Source of the DNA: Polymyxa betae A26-41
Taxonomy: Eukaryota; Protista; Endomyxa: Phytomyxea
Reading direction: 5' to 3'
Length of the DNA stretch: 64,000 nucleotides
Assembly: GCA_003693705.1 (NCBI GenBank)
Contig: RBZT01000703.1
Location: forward strand, 1-64,000
How positions within the stretch are numbered: the stretch's first letter is position 1; each line of letters begins with the position of its first letter. Below the pieces are notes generated by a model. That model saw only the letters and a program-made list of their open reading frames with translations, ran no database searches and was not told the DNA's origin. The translations under genes and the position numbers were made by a program. This document shows positions 10,087-20,916 of the stretch, piece after piece.

Positions 10087-10955
10087 ATGACGCCGACGAT
10101 CACTTTTTACTATGACGTAATCAGCCCATATTCGTTCCTGGCGTTCCGGCAGCTAGAGCTCCTGCAGAAGCAATGGCCAAACGTCGTCGTCGAATATCGC
10201 CCTGTGCAGATTTTCTTTATAGTAAAGGTTGCTTCGTTTATAATGAAAACCTCTTAATCTGAATTCTTATCCTTGTGCCCATTCTTTTTCGAGCCAACTT
10301 ATCCGTCGCGATATAGTTTGGAAGTTTTTATCTCGGTTTCTTAAACATTCTTATTTTTATGTGGTTCGGTTCTGTCAGCACTTTAAAACTTTTTTGGGTG
10401 TAAGTTGAATCAAACGATTTTTGATCCATCTAAAATCGTACTTCACAGTCTGCCAAAAACATTGCCCCTGGGTCGGTCGTCGCCAAGCTCAAATGGATCT
10501 TAAAAGATCTTCAGCGCGCTGCGAGCGACCTCGGAATCTCTGATCTCAAAATGCCGTCGAAATTATTTCAAACACGAACAGCTCTGCTGATTTTAACAGC
10601 GCTTCGTAACAATCCGTTCTATCTTATCAAGGCTACATCTAGAATCTACGACGCCATCTTTATCAACGCCCAATTCAAGGATACATTTCCAGCTTTGAAA
10701 GAAATTCTTCGCGATGTCCTTCCCGCTGATGTGCTGAACAAGGCGATCGAATCAGCGCAAACGGAATCGGTTGCTGCCATGCTGCAGCAGACTAACGAAG
10801 AGGCGTTGTCAAAAGGCGCCTTCGGCCTGCCAACCCTGATAGTTCGTTCGCAGGGCGGCCCAGACGAATTCTTTTTCGGCAATGATCGATGGCATCATAT
10901 CGCTCAGGTCTTACGTCAGCCTTGGCCTGTAAATTCGATTAAATCGAATCTATAG
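10087..10955 (+). CDS. GSTK1: Glutathione S-transferase kappa / HCCA isomerase (DsbA-like), 2 exons
   Basis: MTPTITFYYDVISPYSFLAF N-terminal motif; EEALSKGAFGLPT...FFGNDR C-terminal motif. Confidence 0.88.
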
Positions 10956-11033
10956 AGCGAAATGTAAGAAAGGCTGATGTTAATAAATTAATAAGTTTTT
11001 ATTGGTCTAGCTAAGTCCAGGCCATGCGGTTAT

Positions 11034-11457
11034 TTACATTTGTTGTTGGCGAGTTTGTTGTGGCTGCTGTTGTTGAAACTCCTGCCATTGCTGGACACGA
11101 CGGCGTTGCTGCTCGTCCAGCTCTCGCTGACGCAGTTTCTGCTGCTGAATCTGGAACTCGTATTGACGGTCGATCTGCTGCTGGCGCAGATTCTGCTGCT
11201 GTTGCTGTTGTTGTTGTTGCTGGCGCAGATTCTGCTGCTGTTGCTGTTGTTGTTGTTGCTGGCGCTGTTGTTGTTGTTGCTGTTGAAGTGGTCGTGAGAC
11301 CTGCTGCTGCTGGATCTGTTGGAATGACGGTTGGCGCTGCACGCGTTGTTGCGATTCAAAGGAAATCGATGGCTGCTGCTGGTAGCGTTGCTGCTGCTGC
11401 TGTTGCTGCTGCTGTTGCTGTTGGGGTTGCCGTCGCTGCTGCTGTTGCTGCTGTGGT

Positions 11458-11489
<32 letters not shown>

Positions 11490-12143
11490 CTGTGATACAA
11501 ACATTAAGTATTGAAGAATATCAACCCAACATCATAAAAAAATCAGGTGTGATTAGGATGGAATTTGTCAAAAAGATAAAGCACAATACATCATACCGGG
11601 CGACGGTTCTGTTGCTGACGGAGTTGGGCGTCGATTTCAGCAGCCCATTTGGCTCCAATAGCCTCCTGTTTAGCACGGATCTGGGCGTTCATTTCAGCGG
11701 CCCATTGCGCTCCAATTCGTTCCTGCTGGGCACGAAGTTCGGCCTCCTCCTACCAACATTCACTCAGGGTTTGGGCATCCATGAAACGAAGTCGTCACCT
11801 TGGCGGATCGTTGGCGACGTTGCTGTTTGGAACGCGGACTGGACAGCGAGCTGGACGCCTTGCGTTTCGGGCTGGACGGCAGCTGCTGGAGGGCGAGTGC
11901 TGGCAAGGATCCGGTGATGGAACGAGTCAAGACCATTGTTGTTGTTGGGCGATGGAGGGGAGTACGACGAAGGAAGATCTGTCTCAAATTGAGGTTCGCG
12001 TTCAGAATGAAGACGACGACGAGGTCGGACCGCCCTTCGACCAGGGCGGCGGGGTCTTGAGTCAACCCCCTGACGGGGAGGCGCGTGCCCACCCTGTCAG
12101 GGTACGCCTCAAAATGACGTTGACGCTGGTCATACTGGACCAT
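11034..12143 (-). CDS. Glutamine-rich (polyQ) hypothetical protein, about 3 exons
   Basis: Exon 1 ends QRRQRSAK; exon 2 is EEAELRAQQERIGAQWAAEMNAQIRAKQEAIGAKWAAEIDAQLRQQQNRRP (tandem internal repeat); exon 3 is a CAG/CAA-rich polyQ tract; GT-AG introns. Confidence 0.55.
11040..11492. repeat. CAG/CAA trinucleotide (polyQ) low-complexity repeat with a duplicated QQQQQQQQQNLRQ unit
   Basis: (ctg/ttg)n runs on the + strand. Confidence 0.9.
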
Positions 12144-12232
12144 CCCTGCTCTGCCCGCCCGACAGGTTCGATATCGTCGCTAGAAGGATGCCGTTTGTAA
12201 GATGCTGTGATGTCTTTATTCGAAATCGCACG

Positions 12233-12257
12233 TTTTGGGTTTTAGGTTTTAGGGTTT
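12233..12257 (+). repeat. Interstitial telomere-like repeat overlapping the SUN stop codon
   Basis: TTTTGGG TTTTAGG TTTTAGGG TTT. Confidence 0.65.
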
Positions 12258-13983
12258 CCAGTGCCATGTACCCGTATCCTATAGATGCAAGTATAGAGCG
12301 GATCTCCATAGTTGCTCTCTATGGTGATATTCACGAGGCGGGCTGCAGACCCGGACGGTCCCAGGGCGAACGTCTGCGCGGTGTCCACATCCTTGACGGG
12401 ATCGGGGCGGCGAAACTCCCCGGACCCCAGCGCCTGGTACCGGACCCCGTCGTCCGAGGCCGCCACGTGGAACTGTCTCGGCGCCGTACTAGACAACAGG
12501 ATGGTGAGCGATGGGAGAACGCGGGAAAGAGCTCCGTGCGGAACGGGCCGGCTGGAAGCGAAAAAACGATACCTAAAGTCCGGGGCCAGCTCCGGAGCGA
12601 CGTGTTCGAATGTGATGGCGTCGATGAAGATGGAATCGGACAGCTGTAACAGAACCCATCCGGATGATCCCGACATTGGCCTGTTGGAAAGCAGTCGGAT
12701 CATGTTACGGCAGTGAAACATAAATTCAACGTCAACGAGATGTAACGCAGGAACATTCGTCCAATGATAAAGAGCTGAAACGTAGCATGACCCACCAGCA
12801 ATCGGAAAGCTGCATGGACGGACGGATCACGTTTCTCACGGGAAACGTTACCGGTGTAAACGTTAGCATCAGTCTGTGATCGCACATTGCCCGTCAGATC
12901 AGACTGCTCAGTGGCTTGTCTTCACGTTACCTGACAAACGTCCACAACGTCACGTAATGGACTCCGCTGGTAGCGATCACCTCTGTATCGTAAACAGTCA
13001 GCGGCAGGCACGGGAGAAACCCGGTTCGGTAACGTAGCTGCCTCCAGTGCTCTCCAGTGCGTAATCGACACGTTCGGTTCGGTCCGCCATGTAACGATAC
13101 AGGAGTCGGTTTACGATACGGCCGACGTCGGCCGAGTCCGCTGTCAGTACCGTAACCATACTGTTCTGGCTATGCAGACGATCCGTTTCCAGACGCCGCA
13201 GTCGCTCATCATATCGTCCGTAACGTGTCTCAAGTCCGTCCAGGACGCTCTGTGGAACGTTAGGCTGCTTGAAACGTTGCTCGACTTGCAGGAGGCGTTC
13301 GGTGAGGTCATTGAAGATAGTTTGTTGCTTCGCCTCCATATTTGTTAATGTCGCATGAAGATGGGTAACGTCAACATCGCCTCTATTGCCATCGTTACGT
13401 TGTATGGAGCCCTAAAGAGGCAGCAGTTGGTAATGGAAAAATCCTGCTAAATACAAGGAACCAGATCGACAGTATATTGTCGTTACAGATGCAGTGATTA
13501 TGTTACAGATTCGATACCTGGGTATGTAATTGATCCAGTCTGGATTCTAGCTTGAGCAATTTTTCGTTAAACGTTACTTGTAACTGTTTGATCTGTAGCT
13601 GGAACTTCTGTTCAGCAGCAGGATCGGAGCCACCTGTGAGTGATGAGTTCAGGGTTTAGGGGTTTAGGGTTTAACCCTCACCTGTCTGCACCTCATCCAG
13701 CTTTGTCTTCATGCGATCTATAGCCTGTTCTAACTCCGTGACTCGTGATATACGAGGATACACTAACGCAGCTAATAGACCGACTAATACAGATACATAC
13801 ACATAGACGCTTGTAACATTATCAGTATCGTAACACTGATGGTTATGTTGCTTACAGTACAGACGACGACTCTTGGCTGTTACTGCTATTTGATCTCTGT
13901 TTTGATGAGGCGATTGGCTCGCTGTCCGAGTCAGCGTAATTCGACTCCGAAGGTTGATGTTTCGTCACGGACTTTCGAGCCAT
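12242..13983 (-). CDS. C-terminal SUN (Sad1/UNC-84) domain nuclear envelope protein
   Basis: Short basic/Ser-rich N-terminus MARKSVTK, a TM helix (VYVYVSVLVGLLAALVY), coiled coil, then VDYALESTGG...ITFEHV...STAPRQFHV...IESNYGDPLYTCIYRIRVHG. Confidence 0.9.
13651..13678 (+). repeat. Interstitial telomere-like repeat in a SUN intron
   Basis: AGGG TTTAGGGG TTTAGGG TTTAACCCT. Confidence 0.65.
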
Positions 13984-14305
13984 GTTACGTTCCAGATATA
14001 TTGTTACCGATGACAGAGGCCTTGGTACCGCCTAATGATCCGTTTCCATACAATATCTACAGTTACGTTACAGGTCCGTGGCAGCGAACGAGCCTGCTAA
14101 CCCAGCAGGCATCAAACGTTACGATTCAGGGGGGCCCGACGCAGTCATACAGATCGGAGATAAACTTACCGTGTCACGTTACAGAATGAAACATAATAGT
14201 GCAATCTGTATACGATACATAGCCGCTTTTTACAAGCAGATGTGGTATATTACTGTATTTTATTATACACAGTATCGGGGTAACATAATGCCATGTAATA
14301 ATACA

Positions 14306-16877
14306 TCAGGCATGAGGCTCCCGCTCTGACTGACACAGTTCACACTGAATGGTTGCGTCCTTCAAACAGCTGACATGAAACGTATGTCCGCAGGGCCGGA
14401 CCCCGATCTGATGCTGTTGTATCAGTTGCAATAATTCCTGTAACATAATCAGCATATGGGACCGAAAATCATGAATTAGGGGGGTTGAACCTGAAGAGAA
14501 CTGCCAGTCGGTTGACGACACACCGAGCATCTGTTACAGTAACGTAACATGCCATCTGCCACCTAACGATACAATCAGTATCAGCCACAGCAACAAGGTG
14601 ATGTTTTGTTAACAATAATCGTTACGATACATGTCATGCTATCACTTCTTTATGTTACAAGCCCTGTAACAAAACGTGATTGAATCTCACCTGATCCATC
14701 AAAGACGCTATCTCTATATTGAAGTCAATATGCGGACACAGATGATATACAGCGACTCCGGGTCGGACTTACCAGCTGGCGGGGGCCGGGCCGGCACGAC
14801 CTCGGCCGTGCGGGCCCGTACGAACTCGATCAGGTCGCGGACTGCATCGTCATGATCTTCCAGAGCAGGATGCCGCTCGAGTAACGTGACCAAGTCGCGG
14901 CCCACATTGTCGTTCATGTTACAGAGGTCGGGCGGCATCTGGGCAATGACAGAGCGAAGATTTTGGAGGTCGCGTTCGGGGTCCTGGGGCCATAACGGGT
15001 GCTGTGCGATCATCATGGGCAGAGACACGCCCTGGTTGTCATAAACGATGAGGCGATGGACGGGGCCTGAAACGTAACGGGCCGCCCAGGTAACGTATTG
15101 GAACAGGTTGAGGCGGAACCCGATCGGGGACCGAGCCAGGGCCGCGGACTTTAGCAATGGGATCAGGACACAGGTCGCCGACGATGCCGATGACAGACGC
15201 AGGGGTTGGTTCAGCTGCATCCTGAGTAACGTAATCAGAACGGGTGTTCACGTTACGTGCGTGATGTTACGGAATACCATTTGTAGAAGACGGAGGCCAG
15301 GCGTAGTTGGTCATTCTCCTCCCAAAAGGTGCGGCCCAGAAACCCGACCAGACTCTGCATATGTGTCGGGTCTGGAAAGCGCTCCATGAAGTAATGTAAA
15401 GTGCTGACCGTAACGTCAATGGCCAGTCGTACGAGACGACGGGAGTGATCCCGCATCAGATCATCGTCAGCGCTTTGTTCCAGTTGGGTACTGAGAGACA
15501 TCAACACTCTCCTACCAGCAGCATCAGTCAGAAGCGGGAGGGTTTTAAGGGTTTAGGGTTCTCCCTACCGTAACGCATCACCGAACGTCGTCAGAAACCT
15601 CTCATACTGATACGGCAGGATATGATCCAGAACACGAACGCACAACTGTTTCACGAACGTGTCCGAGTCGTACTGGTCCAGGGACTGGCTGAGCAGAAAC
15701 AGAGAGACGCCGGCGAGGCCGTCCAGATCGCCGTCGAAGAATTGCAGCTCGATCAGCAGATCCGTGACGAGATCGTCATCGTCGGACGGCAGCCCAAGGC
15801 GACCCAGTACGGCGCGGATGTCGGCGTACGGCGCAATGCACGGGTAGAACAGGCGGATGCCGTGCAGGTACGGCAATTGGGCGAGCTCGGCCCGGACCAA
15901 GGTGGCGGCCGCGCCGGTGTCCGTGCGCTGTAACAGGCGGCGCCAGATGCGGAACACGCCGTCGTCGACGCGGTCCGGGAACCCGCGTCGAACCGTCTCG
16001 TAGCACGGCGCGAGGAGCGCCGGGTCGTGTAACGCAGGGAACTCCGGGGCCGCCAACGTCCTCTCCATGTACCAGATGGTCCGAGCGGACTGTGACCAGT
16101 CGGGCAGCGTCTGGGTCGATGCAAGCAGCGACGGGACCCGGGCGTAGTCCGAGGCCGGCAACTGCAGGACCAGTACGGCGCAGAATTCGGCGAGTAGGGC
16201 CGTGGGTCGGGACGGAGCGCCGACCTGGGCCTGAATCCAGCCGATCACGTCGTCGGTGTAGTCCGGAATACGGCACTGATAGAAACACGAATCAGATATC
16301 CGATTAACGTTACTGTAAACTCTAATAAGGAAACGTCACGTTATATGAGAGGTGAAGTTACCTCACATGAAACATGAAGCAACGTTAGTTGAAACATAAA
16401 GCAAAAACTGAAAAAGAATCGCCATCATACATAGTCACAATATCCGCTGATGAAGAGATCGGAGATATCAGAGTCCGGACTCCCATTGAAGTAACAGTAC
16501 AGCTCCAGGGCCGCGATGTTCATCAGATCGTACTGGCCCCAGATATCCTGTATTCCATGCCTACAGTGATATTAGGTCACCGTGCGGTTTCATGTTACAT
16601 ATGGATCAAGCGTATCGTAAATCAACAGAAAACAGCAAGCGTATCAGAACAACAGTAAAATGTAACGTAGAAACAGCAGAATGAAATCACGTTACATTTG
16701 GCTGTACTCGCTGTACAGAAGCTGCAGTGCGGATTCCGGGTTGAATTCCGGGATCGTATCGTCGGACGTGGTGGTGTCATCGCTCATGGCGACATCGTAG
16801 GTGCCGGTGGCGCACACCGGCCCAAGTAACGTGACCAGGACGACGAGTAACGTGGCCCCAGCAGCGAGTACGACCAT
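14306..16877 (-). CDS. Putative secreted protein with a C-terminal RING-H2 finger, multi-exon
   Basis: Signal-peptide-like MVVLAAGATLLVVLVTLLGPVCA; helical middle region; spliced C-terminus CSVC...PCGHTFHVSC...CELC. Confidence 0.6.
15539..15560 (+). repeat. Interstitial telomere-like repeat in a RING-gene intron
   Basis: AGGG TTTTAAGGG TTTAGGG TT. Confidence 0.6.
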
Positions 16878-17064
16878 GTCGCGAGATCTGCGCCGACAGA
16901 AGAATAGAGGCTCTACCATGACCAGAAGATCGCCCAGAACTGCGGTCGGAACTTCCTCCCGAACTGATCCGAGACCGATCCCATACGGGCGGGCCGGGTC
17001 GGGGGCCGGTATGACTTGACCAGACCGTCCCGACGACGAGAATGGAAAGAAAGTGCGCGCGACT

Positions 17065-17087
17065 CTAAACCCTAAAACCCTAGCCCT
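17065..17087 (-). repeat. Telomere-like (telo-box-like) repeat upstream of the RING gene
   Basis: CTAAA CCCTAAAA CCCTAG CCCT on the + strand. Confidence 0.6.
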
Positions 17088-17392
17088 TCGACCCTGTCCT
17101 CGCTAATTGTTCGATCCGCCAGGTCGGTAGGAGGCCCATTCACAGTGCTGCTTAGCTGTCCCTTCTCTCTCGGTTACAACGGCGCTGCTGGAAAGCGCCA
17201 AATTTCTGTCCATTTCTCTTCAGGAGCCCTCATCACGCCCATAATATTTATTTTGCGGTCGTCGCTGGCAATAAGAGCATCGGGCAGCATCGTCATTTTG
17301 CAGTACGCTACGGTATCAGATTCATTGCGGAGATCGATTCAAACTCTGTGCTTGCATTAGTGCGGACTTGGAGCTGTGATAAGATCTCGTTA

Positions 17393-17873
17393 CTAGGATT
17401 CACGTCTGTAGATTGTAACGGAAGAGCCGTTGGGCTCAATGAGCGGCTCCCAGGCAATAATTTCGAACACGCTAAAGTGATTATCAAAAATTACGATATT
17501 AAACTGAACGACCGAGCTGTCTGATACTAGGTAGGGAACTATGGACTCCGATCGGCTCTGAATTCTCTCGAATTCGACCTGGATCTGACAAATCAAGCCG
17601 AAAACCTTCTCATAATGTTTCATGACAATGTTTGTTTTTATTTTTGTCGTTGAAGCAATCAGGCAACGTTTGATCATGTTGATAGCCGCATCTTAATCTT
17701 GGGCTCTCTGTCCATCGTTGATGAAGACGTTTTCAAAAGAGTTGGGACAGTGTTGCATGACTGTATTGACGATCGAGTTTTTTTTTCTGCAAAATATACC
17801 CCGGCTCTGTACTGGAGCCGTTTAAGGCGCACCATTTGCAGATCCGGACAGCTGATATGGCTAGCTCGGTCAT
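17393..17873 (-). pseudogene. Possibly degraded intronless ORF of unknown origin
   Basis: The 94-aa ORF extends upstream through an in-frame TAA and a probable frameshift in an A9 run; it sits next to a strand-skewed tract. Confidence 0.2.
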
Positions 17874-19192
17874 TAATTTAATGCGTCGATGCGCGGTTGA
17901 TTTCTACATAGAGGCTGCTGTTGACGCTATATTGATTGATGAGTAGCGTGCTGGACAATGAAGCGATCACTTTTCACAGGCGGCAGTTGCGTTTTTCATA
18001 TTCCACGGCGTGACGAACGCCTCCACAACAAAGACGCAAGTTTGAAAAAATCCAGGCTGGTGCGTGGATATGATTGGGGATGTTTTTTTGGGAAGTTTGG
18101 TTTGGTATGGGAATGGACTGTTATGGGAAATGGGATTTGATTTCTAATACAAATGACGGTGTGGGTTTGGATGGTTTTGGATGAATTTGAGTTTGATTTG
18201 GGTGATTGAAATTGGGATCTGGTGGGACGGTGATCTCTGGATGCTCGTTTATTTACGAAGTTTCAATTGAAGTTTTCATTGATTTATGTTGTCACTTCAC
18301 GAAATGTTTTTTTCCTTCCCATCCTTTACAATCTAAATTTTTTGTGTAATAGGTCGACAAACCATCATGGCACCAAAATGAGAAAGCAAAAAAATTCAAT
18401 ATAAAGATGATCATCTGGTGAGTGGTCTGAACGTGCAACGAAATAGCCAAACCATTAGATATATATTGCTTAGTTGGTTGCCCATTTGATGCAAAATTGG
18501 TCTGATTGAATTTATTCGGGTCGATGCGCTACATTTTCTCTTGCGAAGGCCGCTACGAAACAGCAGATCGTAAGATTTGATGCAAAAATGTGTTTGGGCT
18601 CCTCGACTCCGACATCCTTCACCCACTTCCTTCTGAGCCTAACTGCTTAAGCACCTCGCTCAGTGGCATCCCTCGCGATTGTTCGTAGCGCGAACAACTA
18701 GCTCAGATGCAACGAAAAGGCCTTGACTCTGATCACTCTGCGAGTCATTCATTGACTGGGTTCCGATTCCATACATGTTTTTCTCAATATCAAAGCTGCA
18801 TTGCAAGCTGCGGATTACAGATGCTGAGCTGAAATGGAATTATAGTCTCCATAGTGGCCAGGAGATCGATTCCATCGAATCGTGATTATTTGAACCGGGC
18901 TACCTACCTTACTTAGATGCAGCCATCTAGAGATGTTCTTCACTAGTCTTTTAAGTACGATACGCCGTCGCACACTGCACATTTCAGGCAAGACTTCAAC
19001 TGGATAGAATGGATCTCGGCGATTGCGGCACTTCGAAAGCCCAAAAAAGTGACAAAGCACGTCACTTGCGACCAATATGCGAATTTACTTGACCGACTAA
19101 CTCTTGGCCAGATATGTTTAGAACAATCCATAATAGATTGGAGAAAGAAAAACAATGAGGCTGTTCTCATTGTCTTCCAAAACAGCATTAAC

Positions 19193-20916
19193 TTAATCGG
19201 AATCCGACTCTTCGATGACATGACGCCTCTTTGCAGCAGGCCTGTGATGAACTTCCACGTCTTCGTCGCCCTCAGATTCTGGTTCATCGACGACTTTTTC
19301 AATCTTCTCCTTTTGTTCCTGTTTCATTTCTTAGAACCGGCATTTGGCGAGAAAAAATCAATGGGAACACGAAAGCATGTATGCAATATTCATTAAGAAT
19401 GAAGAGGAAAGAAAAAGACTGAAAGATTATATATAAAATATTTTGAAAAAGAAAAGATCTATTGAATTCGAAACATTCAAAAAGTAAAGATTGAATGACA
19501 AAATGAACCTTTTTCTTGATGATGGCACGCCCTTTGATATCTTCGCCTCTCTTCGCTGCTTGCAAGCGCTGAGCGACACCGTCTTCGTCTAAGACACGAC
19601 GACGAGGTGCCTCTTCTTCGCTGCTGAGCTCTTCTTCTTCGGAATACTCTAAGAAATCGGCAGAGAAGGAATCCGGCGGCGGAACGAATCGTTGTGCCCT
19701 CTCGCGAGCGCTCTCCCGCATCTCTTTCAAACGGTATTGCTGCAGCATACGTTCAGATAGGCGCTCGAGCCACAACGATAAACAAAGGTGACAAATTCTT
19801 GGGAAAGGAAAAACGTCGCTACCCGAATCTTCTCTTCAACGTCCTTCTCAGGATCGGTTGTCGTGACGATCTTCTTCGCCGTCTGGACCGGAGTGTGCAC
19901 GATCTTCTTCCGTTTGGGGACAAGTACGACCAGGTTCTGGGCGGGTTTCACCAGCACTTTCGATGTGAACGCAGCGCGGCATTGCTGCAGCTGATCGTCG
20001 CCGACATCGGTCTGATCGTACAGATAGTGAAGGCGATCAGGCAATGGCGTCTTGACGATATCGAGCACCAACGACCCTACTAACATCTGAATGCAAAAAA
20101 TTGAACATCAGTGCTCTGAAACAATTGCCAAAATTCAGCTTTGAGAAACAAAATTAACGGAAAAGGTGAAAAGTGAATCATATCAAGAAATCATATTGAA
20201 TAAACAGTTTTCAATCATACACAAAACAGTACGGTAGAGAAGCGATACCTGAACAGTGCCATCCGACCAAGTTACAAATCGAGCGTTGCTTTCCCTGAAC
20301 TTATTCCCTTCTTCGTCTTCAACCATGCGCCATCGGATCTTATGGGGAATATGATAGGCATCACCTAACACGTCCCTCAAATCGAGTAATTAGCACACAG
20401 CAGCAACCACATACCGTTGCTATCGACAATTTCTTGGCGAACGCGCTCGGGATCGAATTCGTCTTGCTCTGCATGCATCCAGGTTGGCATCTTTACAGTG
20501 CAGAGCTCGGTTCCTAGAAACAAAATTAAACTCAGAAGAGACGGTTGAGAATAGGCCAGCATTACCAAAACGAAAATAAGAAACTACGTTTGTCATAAAA
20601 AAAAACAAAACATGAGCAATGATCATCTTTGATGTTTACTACCAGTGCCTCCTATACTGATGTGATCCCGAGATTTCTTAATGGTTCTTGAAGGGCCCAA
20701 GACCCTCTGCTTGGATGGCGTCGTGAACGGTTTCACATCCCTCATCTTCTGATCCTGAACGGCGTCGGCCTCGCGCTCATCTTCACTGCCGAACAGATCG
20801 TCGTCAGTGCCAGGAGCAGACTTGGGCTCGGAATCGTCCGATTTCGGTTTCGCCCTCTGATCGGCGCCATCGTCGAGCTCTAGATCGGACCCGAACAGAT
20901 CATCATCATCCGACAT
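19193..20916 (-). CDS. LEO1: RNA polymerase-associated Paf1 complex subunit Leo1
   Basis: Acidic DDDLFGSD N-terminus; IRWRMVEDEEGNKFRESNARFVTWSDGTVQ Leo1 core; DPEKD; acidic/basic C-terminus. Confidence 0.88.

Follow-up and report, generated by a model that had tools for sequence, protein, structure and literature searches.

Gene-sized islands dense in the pentamer GTWAC extend over unrelated genes of Polymyxa betae and may constitute a DNA-level mark

The DUS/USS, Chi, and KOPS sequences of bacteria are short words that occur inside genes at about one per kb or more and shape codon or peptide choice; to our knowledge, none of them forms islands of selected genes. In the CpG islands and the bimodal gene-body CpG seen under DNA methylation, density classes arise because DNA chemistry or repair differs locally, and proteins then read them. 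Telomere-like repeats, such as the plant telobox (AAACCCTA) and the Tbf1 sites of yeast, are found at promoters, in 5' introns, and at domain borders, where their readers, proteins of the Myb type, insulate or bring in chromatin modifiers, and short interstitial telomere-like inserts are known elsewhere as scars of telomerase-healed breaks. The highly iterated palindrome HIP1 (GCGATCGC) of cyanobacteria, the function of which was long obscure, has been linked to orphan DNA methyltransferases (PMC5861425, PMC4390886). Finally, the periodic An/Tn clusters (PATCs) of C. elegans are thought to set chromatin or silencing state (PMC4947018).

The window analyzed here comprises 64,000 nucleotides of P. 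betae A26-41 (positions 1 to 64,000 of contig RBZT01000703.1, assembly GCA_003693705.1, which was binned from a metagenome). Its core island, at positions 12646 to 16851, holds 51 GTWAC sites (W being A or T), 27 GTAAC and 24 GTTAC by direct count, which is exactly the number obtained by hand in the preliminary description; further sites at 17173, 17389, and 17415 prolong the run to 54 sites in 12646 to 17419 (11.3 per kb). The three 2-kb bins over 12 to 18 kb contain 19, 23, and 12 sites versus 0 to 6 in all other bins, and the segments on either side (10611 to 12645 and 17420 to 20270) are free of the word. Outside the island, 66 sites are spread over about 59 kb (1.1 per kb, versus about 11 per kb within it); the long tubulin open reading frame (ORF) holds one, as had been estimated for this gene. 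For the whole window, 120 sites compare with 69 ± 7.5 by dinucleotide shuffle.

Simulations using the island's own composition (500 runs per model) yielded 7.7 ± 2.7 sites by base shuffle, 8.6 ± 2.7 (maximum 17) by an order-1 Markov model (dinucleotide level), and 18.4 ± 4.2 (maximum 33) by an order-2 model (trinucleotide level), so that the enrichment survives a local di- and trinucleotide-preserving test; the order-3 model alone, which already contains GTAA and TAAC, neared the observed count (38.9 ± 6.3). The frequent extension to ACGTTAC or GTAACGT noticed earlier was recovered in 20 cases (9 and 11, respectively), while GATAC and GTATC, put at about 18, were counted 17 times (9 plus 8) and are only 2.5-fold enriched. 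Among the one-mismatch neighbors of GTWAC the lowest is ATWAC (0.4-fold); GTSAC is 1.7-fold up and GCAAC stands at 0.7-fold, with an island CpG observed/expected ratio of 1.2 and no AT shift. A footprint of RIP-like mutation or deamination was rejected, as the precursor words (GCAAC/GTTGC, GTSAC) are not depleted as it would need and the AT shift is missing.

Two minus-strand genes with 14 introns in total lie under the island, as delineated by RNA-derived contigs of three other studies. The transcript of the first, a RING gene, spans 14067 to 17032 (spliced RNA contigs of X3 and X6); its coding sequence (CDS; 16919 to 14306, 656 amino acids) is interrupted by seven GT-AG introns (14438-14490, 14563-14690, 14714-14772, 15222-15277, 15512-15568, 16276-16430, and 16561-16695). 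The protein has a signal or transmembrane segment at its N terminus, a RING finger (identified by Pfam RING matches on 14309-14437) at its C terminus, and an orphan region in between; exon 15571-16248 found no homologue among 1.84 billion representatives. Separated from it by a spacer of at most 45 nucleotides, the transcript of a SUN-domain gene spans 12158 to 14021 (RNA contigs), with a CDS from 13983 to 12242 (409 amino acids) and likewise seven introns (12489-12572, 12681-12795, 12874-12930, 12983-13038, 13412-13517, 13634-13681, and 13810-13855), of which 12983-13038 is GC-AG and the 84-nucleotide intron 12489-12572 is in frame and retained in X3. The SUN domain itself (Pfam Sad1_UNC, E = 1.2e-13) maps to 12245-12487. 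Homology and domain searches were run one exon at a time, and the spliced proteins were joined for counting only.

GTWAC sites extend across both RNA-defined transcripts (12158-17032) and then end sharply. Their presence in the introns, the spacer, and the coding exons of two unrelated genes, as originally described, also holds for the untranslated regions (UTRs) and about 400 bp upstream, with densities declining from introns (17 per kb) through UTRs (about 13 per kb) and CDS (7.5 per kb) to conserved domains. Since both strands are used equally (27/24 overall; 12 sense GTAAC versus 8 sense GTTAC in introns), the signal is one of the DNA and not of the transcript. Two introns start with GTAAC and several contain inverted GTAACGT...ACGTTAC pairs, while three (13634-13681, 14714-14772, and 15512-15568) lack GTWAC. 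In coding DNA, the excess arises through codon choice: the two CDS together carry 24 sites versus about 9 after synonymous shuffling, an approximately 2.6-fold excess (14 versus 4.6 ± 1.8 for the RING gene and 10 versus 4.7 ± 1.7 for the SUN gene). Seven of the ten TTA leucine codons of the RING gene stand in G-TTA-C, and the synonymous construction proposed for its signal-peptide exon is indeed found there, with ACG-TTA-C (Thr-Leu) at 16826 and 16847 in the sense of two copies of the 14-mer (C)RAGTAACGTGRCC (16823 to 16857, plus strand); a third copy lies at 14878-14891. All three reading frames host the word, save the frame reading TAA. Of the positions at which the amino acids permit it, 32 to 36% carry the word in these two genes, though only 1 of 4 to 5 is used in each of the SUN-domain and RING-finger parts.

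The island word can be written in extended form as (T)GTAAC(R)T(W)A, on either strand and about once per 100 bp: position +1 is a purine in 92% of cases, +2 is T in 63%, +4 is A in 52 to 59%, and -1 is rarely A. The same consensus recurs in islands on other contigs and suggests a binding site, of which such flanks would be typical. GTWAC is a palindrome with a degenerate center, directional flanks, and doubles that are direct rather than inverted. Both tandems pointed out previously are present: GTTACGTTAC at 14062 to 14071 (units at 14062 and 14067, plus strand) where the RING transcript's 3' end meets the spacer, and GTAACGTAAC at 14539 to 14548 (units at 14539 and 14544, plus strand) inside a coding exon, where a GTTAC precedes at 14533 and the sense strand reads RYVTVT. 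Gaps of 6 to 9 bp between sites are depleted (7 versus about 20 expected), whereas gaps of exactly 5 bp are in excess, as are, weakly, those of 100 to 140 bp; the sites show no 10-bp or 3-bp periodicity, and GTAAC keeps no fixed spacing to the other island words CGGAC and CCCTA. Neighbors within 120 nucleotides are direct in 365 and inverted in 287 cases. Doubles share their central base (35 direct versus 4 GTAACGTTAC and 0 GTTACGTAAC) and are 3.7 times as frequent as predicted from single-site flanks. The PAR-bZIP palindrome GTTACGTAAC, having no copy in 59 kb of islands, was dismissed as an explanation, as was microsatellite growth, given a single (GTAAC)3 in the genome against 244 doubles.

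The island is not unique, which speaks against a centromere. On 18 of 21 stretches examined, 33 similar islands were found, the 20 loci fetched for this survey having been picked for holding the doubled word GTAACGTAAC. Genome counts of 244 GTAACGTAAC and 3,850 ACGTTAC correspond to about 0.3 to 0.55 Mb of island DNA, roughly 1% of the 27-Mb genome, and the class would comprise about 100 or more gene-sized domains; a similar density is therefore not common genome-wide, as the preliminary description required. Its suggestion of a centromere, an origin, or an array present once per chromosome was not borne out, as the islands recur on many contigs, follow gene bodies, and have unrelated sequences; a centromere should moreover be a gene-poor repeat array, yet this island consists of two expressed, spliced genes. 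Across islands, GTWAC reaches an observed/expected ratio of 5.3 (order 1) or 3.4 (order 2), with no complementary depletion in bulk DNA, where the ratio is 1.2 to 1.3 and the count equals the shuffle expectation. Permissive positions are used in 44% of cases (110/249) in 20 island ORFs versus 7% (15/214) in 14 ordinary ORFs. The word CACGGAC, the word AAGTCCG, and NCG codons are also enriched. Searches of this island by blastn and tblastx, against the window and 185 kb of further loci with islands, detected no homology, so the islands are not a repeat family; a transposable element or satellite was likewise rejected, there being no repeated copies and, as the sole flanking repeat, a pair of telomere-like blocks. 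Island genes encode SUN, RING, P-type ATPase, and likely ABC transporter proteins and show no function in common. Pfam domains were found in 1 of 10 island ORFs versus 3 to 4 of 10 non-island ORFs, a difference that is not significant, and a 377-amino-acid island ORF had no detectable homologue.

Four telomere-like blocks occur in the window, all of them in or at the island, the remaining 59 kb being free of tandem blocks. The block at 12232 to 12257 (TTTTAGG/TTTAGGG units, plus strand) marks the left island edge and, on the sense strand, contributes the last codons of the SUN CDS together with its stop. Together with a block of CCCTAAA units (as read on the plus strand) at 17062 to 17091 on the minus strand, 30 to 60 nucleotides upstream of the RING transcript 5' end, it forms an inverted repeat around the island. 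The other two, both on the plus strand, lie in introns: 13647 to 13672 makes up most of the 48-nucleotide intron 13634-13681, both borders of which are crossed by a 7-nucleotide direct repeat (ACAGGTG on the sense strand), and 15536 to 15561 lies within the 57-nucleotide intron 15512-15568. Among large islands generally, 10 of 18 edges have a telomere-like dimer within 500 nucleotides versus 3.3 expected (P = 0.0004). The comparison of these blocks with telobox and Tbf1 sites covers position relative to the islands; they may act as borders.

Like HIP1, GTWAC is a short, hyper-abundant word in coding and noncoding DNA that is placed through codon choice and spaced quasi-regularly, and its count in coding DNA greatly exceeds the Markov expectation whatever the frame. 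HIP1 is, however, a true 8-bp palindrome distributed over whole bacterial genomes, whereas GTWAC, found in a eukaryote, has five letters that extend directionally, and its gene-sized islands take up some 1% of the genome, the bulk being at expectation (1.1 per kb); and while HIP1 is tied to methyltransferases, the candidate matches for GTWAC are three partial ones to PF01555. With PATCs it shares the nature of a DNA-level feature running through the bodies of a subset of genes, unrelated to the encoded proteins, but PATCs are noncoding (intronic), AT rich, and of 10-bp period, whereas GTWAC enters exons via synonymous codons and lacks that period. As under CpG methylation, word density splits genes or regions into two classes, but here a specific pentamer stands about 5-fold above expectation in place of a dinucleotide spared from decay, the whole window shows a CpG observed/expected ratio of about 1, and the genome search detected no C5 methyltransferase. 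A GC or CpG island was excluded on similar grounds, the GC content being that of other genic DNA and GC at third codon positions (GC3) being unrelated to site density. Finally, DUS/USS, Chi, and KOPS are genome-wide, bacterial, and served by known machinery, unlike these islands of selected genes.

On this sequence evidence, we tentatively read the island as a dense array of putative recognition sites for a DNA-binding or DNA-modifying protein marking whole transcription units, a reading we regard as possible but short of probable. In each domain, a whole transcription unit would be overprinted with the word (in this case both closely spaced genes together with some 400 bp upstream), the homotypic array would be read by a sequence-specific DNA-binding or DNA-modifying protein, and this putative reader would set the units apart as a chromatin domain of their own, at or near the borders of which lie short telomere-like ("telobox"-type) elements. 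In its wider form, held with the same reserve, this would be a eukaryotic gene-body code: about 1% of genes would have near-saturating sites, synonymous codon positions included, that are kept by selection or drive and recognized by a system that binds or methylates DNA in a sequence-specific manner, perhaps a bacterial-type N6/N4 methyltransferase, and telomere-like elements would serve as domain borders. The sole leads to a reader or writer are the three partial matches to PF01555, a bacterial-type N6/N4 DNA methyltransferase family, elsewhere in the metagenome-binned assembly of 1,001 contigs, at C964:23341-23502, C851:53672-53827, and C536:4891-4962. The DNA-level code over the genes that was initially proposed is supported by strand symmetry, its reach across introns, UTRs, and CDS, and the synonymous excess, but not in its centromere or origin form. 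Maintaining one site per 100 bp within coding sequence would burden it heavily if the sites form a binding array, which counts against this reading; the co-enrichment of CACGGAC, AAGTCCG, and NCG codons is more reminiscent of a mutational regime than of one binding site; and the density gradient from introns to conserved domains is also expected of a mutational drive under purifying selection.

Such a drive, with conversion or very-short-patch-like repair resolving mismatches toward GTAAC-type words, is the main rival, which we consider rather unlikely. It would be strong only in break- or recombination-prone stretches, where neutral positions fill and purifying selection spares conserved codons; the drop in density with constraint, down to 1 of 4 to 5 positions in domain parts, fits this, as do the joint enrichment of several unrelated words with NCG codons, the clustering of telomere-like inserts in and around islands (two of them forming introns here), and the fact that all 11 strain differences across 11800-17700 are transversions. 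Ten of these differences could be placed (9 in X12, 1 in X2), and none touches a GTWAC site. Ordinary GC-biased conversion is not the process, as GC3 does not track site density. Against the drive, a six-frame search of the genome returned no Vsr-type endonuclease, C5 methylase, or Dam-type methylase; the one-mismatch neighbors are too little drained for a ten-fold gain, even in the case of ATWAC; and the island borders match transcription units, which a recombination hotspot does not require.

Foreign or introgressed DNA, from an organism or diverged relative with a genome-wide bias toward the word, appears improbable. It would account for the coherent tetranucleotide signature of islands even with GTWAC masked (r = 0.74 island-island, 0.45 island-bulk, and 0.59 bulk-bulk), for the lack of a Pfam domain in most long island ORFs and of a homologue for two queries, and it accords with a source assembly that is a binned metagenome. 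The codon usage of island ORFs, however, is indistinguishable from that of native genes (RSCU correlation of island with ordinary ORFs 0.74 to 0.78; ordinary split halves 0.74 ± 0.04), which speaks for native genes with an overlay. Island genes carry short GT-AG introns and include core eukaryotic genes, and a single DNA contig belonging to a second study (run X2, possibly of the same biological source) covers all 5.9 kb (11800-17700) plus both flanks with one difference, while spliced transcripts in three further studies differ by 0 to 5 letters per contig. Native codon usage and the independent DNA contig together make a chimera or a distant foreign origin unlikely; a foreign source would in any case merely shift the question to the donor. 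An assembly chimera or contaminant was judged unlikely, as the junctions are supported by the X2 contig and the exons by three RNA data sets, and so was horizontal acquisition on grounds of composition, the codon usage being at the native baseline and the GC content typical of the window's genic DNA.

Two further explanations are very improbable. In the first, GUAAC/GUUAC pairs would fold the pre-mRNA, or branch-point- or 5' splice-site-like signals would aid the splicing of short introns. The introns are indeed densest, with the GTAAC starts and inverted pairs noted above, and one island pre-mRNA segment folds slightly better than shuffles (z = -2.5 versus -0.5 for tubulin), a weak score based on 20 shuffles; yet both orientations are equally common, neighbors are more often direct than inverted, the word is common in exons, UTRs, and the upstream 400 bp, and three introns do without it. 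In the second, a mobile element or integrase making 5-bp staggered cuts would have left the (GTAAC)2 doubles as post-excision target-site duplications. HIV-1 integrase produces a 5-bp duplication and has GTWAC as a known weak target consensus (PMC3526291), and the retained central base, the excess of doubles over the flank prediction, and the 244 doubles beside one triple are in keeping with this origin. However, no more than about 12% of the sites could have arisen in this way; elements with such ends were not detected, nor do the islands share repeat homology; and 5-nucleotide footprints would disrupt the reading frame of exons, which are nonetheless rich in sites.

For P. betae, a plant-root parasite and agriculturally relevant virus vector, the GTWAC islands, sharply bounded in density at about 10 versus 1 per kb, point to an undescribed DNA-level marking of selected genes. 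Should sequence-specific conversion bias by repair prove to be the cause instead, the islands would map break- or conversion-prone DNA, through a bias of a kind not known in eukaryotes. If the marking is real, the islands would be a gene-selective parallel, and the first in a eukaryote, to cyanobacterial HIP1: a second, strand-symmetric DNA code within eukaryotic protein-coding genes that dictates between one-third and one-half of the synonymous choices open to them. Codon usage would then be under a constraint of a new kind, and selected genes would be marked in a new way.

A recount across the 64-kb window returned 120 sites of the word GTAAC or GTTAC (jointly GTWAC). The island at 12646-16851, for which 51 sites had been claimed from counting by hand, contains exactly this number (27 GTAAC and 24 GTTAC), and the run is prolonged by three further sites at 17173, 17389, and 17415. 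When the window was divided into 2-kb bins, those covering 12 to 18 kb held 19, 23, and 12 sites and the remaining ones 0 to 6 each; the density beyond the island was 1.1 per kb, the same as expected from dinucleotide shuffling of the window (69 ± 7.5 sites per 64 kb). Shuffling the bases of the island left 7.7 ± 2.7 sites. Simulations on island composition yielded 8.6 ± 2.7 sites with an order-1 model and 18.4 ± 4.2 with an order-2 model (maximum of 33 in 500 runs), both far below 51, so that the excess survives di- and trinucleotide controls, i.e., the refutation test named in the preliminary description and run here. The sole near match came from an order-3 model (38.9 ± 6.3 sites), into which GTAA and TAAC are already built. 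The finer features described earlier were found as well: the extensions ACGTTAC/GTAACGT, said to be frequent, were counted 20 times, both direct tandems are present, the signal-peptide exon does contain the ACG-TTA-C codons, and GATAC/GTATC occurs 17 times (about 18 had been claimed), which is an only 2.5-fold increase.

Contigs from three sequencing runs of other studies (X3, X6, and X12) aligned to the window with 14 clean joints, all of which read CT..AC on the plus strand and thus GT-AG on the minus strand, except for one GC-AG intron (12983-13038), the only one of the 14 with a non-GT 5′ splice site. As the joints match minus-strand introns, these contigs represent cDNA. They support two minus-strand genes with seven introns each, separated by no more than 45 nt: a RING gene (transcript approximately 17032-14067, coding sequence [CDS] 16919-14306) for a protein of 656 residues with a signal or transmembrane segment at its N-terminal start and a RING finger at its end, and a SUN-domain gene (transcript approximately 14021-12158, CDS 13983-12242) for a protein of 409 residues. 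A DNA contig of a further study (X2) spans 11800-17700 and beyond with one difference; its continuity over island and flanks rules out a chimeric join, with the reservation that X2 may share the biological source; with the RNA contigs as further independent evidence, chimera and contamination were rejected. Several details concern strain or transcript variation. The in-frame 84-nt intron 12489-12572 of the SUN-domain region is removed in X6 and X12 and kept in the X3 contig, where its retention would add 28 residues. In the cDNA of X12, which is another sample, eight other letters (CTGCGTTA) replace 13637-13685, making it 9 nt longer than the reference spliced form; hence, strains differ in this intron or at its borders. 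Within 11800-17700, the other runs differ from the reference by 11 single letters (10 in X12, one in X2). All are transversions, including five A>C or T>G changes, and there are no transitions; the cause is either an unusual mutation spectrum or technical. The SUN transcript is abutted at its 3′ end by the neighboring poly-Q gene (11034-12143), in which no GTWAC site occurs; contig depth there is far higher, at approximately 780 versus 10 to 40.

The word had been claimed to occupy introns and coding exons of both genes, and it does so: 20 sites fall within 1,155 nt of introns (17 per kb), 6 within 474 nt of untranslated regions (approximately 13 per kb), and 24 within 3,201 nt of CDS (7.5 per kb). 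Introns use both orientations (12 GTAAC and 8 GTTAC in the sense strand), whereas sense GTTAC prevails in CDS (18 versus 6), as would be expected since GTAAC reads TAA in one frame. The proposed construction of the word by synonymous codon choice was confirmed by synonymous-codon shuffling within each gene, with 14 sites versus 4.6 ± 1.8 for the RING gene and 10 versus 4.7 ± 1.7 for the SUN gene; 7 of the 10 TTA leucine codons of the RING gene lie within G-TTA-C. Permissive positions, defined as those at which the amino acid sequence could carry the word through synonymous choice, are filled in 14 of 39 cases (RING) and 10 of 31 cases (SUN). Over 20 island open reading frames (ORFs), 110 of 249 (44%) are filled, compared to 15 of 214 (7%) in 14 ordinary ORFs, a contrast partly built in by the word-based definition of islands, the finding being the degree of saturation. 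Permissive positions per residue are 1.5 times more common in island ORFs, so that the effect extends, mildly, to the proteins themselves. The conserved SUN-domain and RING-finger parts each fill just one of four to five such positions.

Oriented as GTAAC, the word is followed by a purine (92%), T (63%), any base, and A (52 to 59%), and is rarely preceded by A; this consensus was also obtained from 306 sites belonging to nine large islands of other contigs. While the GTWAC core is a palindrome with W at its center, the flanks are directional. Adjacent copies are direct, with 35 cases of GTAACGTAAC or GTTACGTTAC, 4 of GTAACGTTAC, and 0 of GTTACGTAAC; direct neighbors reach 3.7 times the prediction from single-site flanks, and the genome totals are 244 doubles and one triple. 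Gaps of 6 to 9 bp between sites are depleted, and a modest excess of pairs 100 to 140 bp apart (z up to 4) was observed for 9 of 10 large islands; no 10-bp or 3-bp periodicity of sites was found.

For P. betae, a plasmodiophorid, an assembly of 27,085,814 bases in 1,001 contigs was searched. The draft genome is described as a sporosorus-metagenome bin of 1,001 contigs and 27,085,946 bp with 45.1% GC (PMC6328671). Sampling comprised the window plus 185 kb in 20 stretches around GTAACGTAAC matches, which, being picked for the word, are not a random genome sample. On 18 of these 21 stretches, 33 islands of 0.5 to 5.3 kb were found, mostly with 7 to 13 sites per kb, and none of the other sampled islands showed sequence similarity to that of the window. 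Their genes include a P-type ATPase (Pfam matches in two exons) and a likely ABC transporter, named by eye from sequence with no Pfam family found; many ORFs have no Pfam domain, and some small contigs (e.g., C7) are island-type along their entire length. ACGTTAC has 3,850 copies genome-wide, at 3.3 per kb in islands and 0.075 to 0.10 per kb in bulk, from which islands are estimated at approximately 0.3 to 0.55 Mb, or 1 to 2% of the genome. Given the number and gene content of the islands, the centromere or origin offered in the preliminary description was rejected. Two sampled islands carry local tandem duplications (L001:2146-2400 and L007:7600-7860; units of approximately 59 and 217 nt) with preserved GTTAC/GTAAC sites and variable flanks. 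One stretch (L004:132-1040; C83:40132-41040 of the assembly) contains an ORF with a strong match to a PIF/Harbinger transposase domain (Plant_tran, E = 2e-33); this ORF has no GTWAC site.

Islands also differ in other words. Site density does not depend on GC3 (tubulin, GC3 of 0.64 and 0.7 sites per kb; island ORFs, 0.47 to 0.58 and 8 to 21 sites per kb). With GTWAC masked, the tetranucleotide signature of islands remains coherent, and CACGGAC (GTCCGTG) occurs 41 times in the islands of L005-L019 and the window versus once in bulk, a 39-fold enrichment; no fixed spacing of this second word to GTAAC was found. AAGTCCG, ACGGACC, and TAGGG/CCCTA (observed/expected, 2.3) are likewise raised, and codon usage is shifted toward NCG codons and away from NCT codons.

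Of 18 edges of large islands, 10 have a short telomere-like dimer no more than 500 nt away, versus 3.3 expected (P = 0.0004). The window has four telomere-like blocks, with no tandem block in the remaining 59 kb. Each island edge has one block, and these two blocks, 4.8 kb apart, are the arms of a 30-nt inverted repeat; the other two account for the bulk of two short introns, supported by cDNA contigs, at 13634-13681 (48 nt) and 15512-15568 (57 nt), with CCCTAAA repeats in the sense strand. The former is flanked by the 7-nt direct repeat ACAGGTG, and these introns may have been born from telomerase-healed breaks. The block at 12232-12257, just upstream of the poly-Q gene, could be a promoter element of the latter. 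An X2 contig (3.2 kb, depth of 194) matches the window only at the block 17065-17087 and continues as AACCCTAACCCTAACCC, indicating that true terminal repeats here may be of TTAGGG or mixed type.

Two readings fit most of these facts, and neither is proven. The one placed slightly ahead, albeit tentatively, is a dense recognition-site array for a putative DNA-binding or DNA-modifying protein; it is favored because of the defined flanks, spacing rules, sharp gene-level borders, and native background. The alternative, considered only slightly less likely, is a drive in break-prone stretches by motif-directed repair or conversion; it is favored by the fall of site density with constraint, the joint enrichment of several words, and the telomere-like inserts. 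A distant foreign origin is unlikely, as relative synonymous codon usage of island and ordinary ORFs correlates (r = 0.74; 0.78 without motif codons) as well as split halves of ordinary ORFs do (0.74 ± 0.04), and introns are short and GT-AG. The case for an RNA-level role is weak, since strands are used symmetrically, more neighbors are direct than inverted, and folding gives a z-score of only -2.5 (20 shuffles). A footprint resembling RIP or deamination was rejected, with precursor words undrained, no AT shift, and a CpG observed/expected ratio of approximately 1.2.

A six-frame genome search for enzymes gave no match for C5 methylase, Dam-type methylase, or Vsr, one MT-A70 gene, and partial candidate matches to the bacterial-type N6_N4_Mtase (PF01555) at C964:23341-23502, C851:53672-53827, and C536:4891-4962 (best E = 6e-11). 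In marine microbes, GTWAC is reported to be a methylated motif for which no enzyme is known (bioRxiv 10.1101/2021.05.08.442635). No eukaryotic gene-body feature with this word was found in a full-text literature search. The nearest known features are cyanobacterial HIP1 (PMC5861425, PMC4390886), the PATCs of C. elegans (PMC4947018), CpG islands, and bacterial uptake sequences, but none of them is a pentamer overprinting exons and introns in a selected 1% of eukaryotic genes. Under the recognition-array reading, a putative DNA-binding or DNA-modifying protein would recognize the GTWAC array and whole transcription units would be marked through it, with telomere-like elements possibly sitting near the borders of the marked units.
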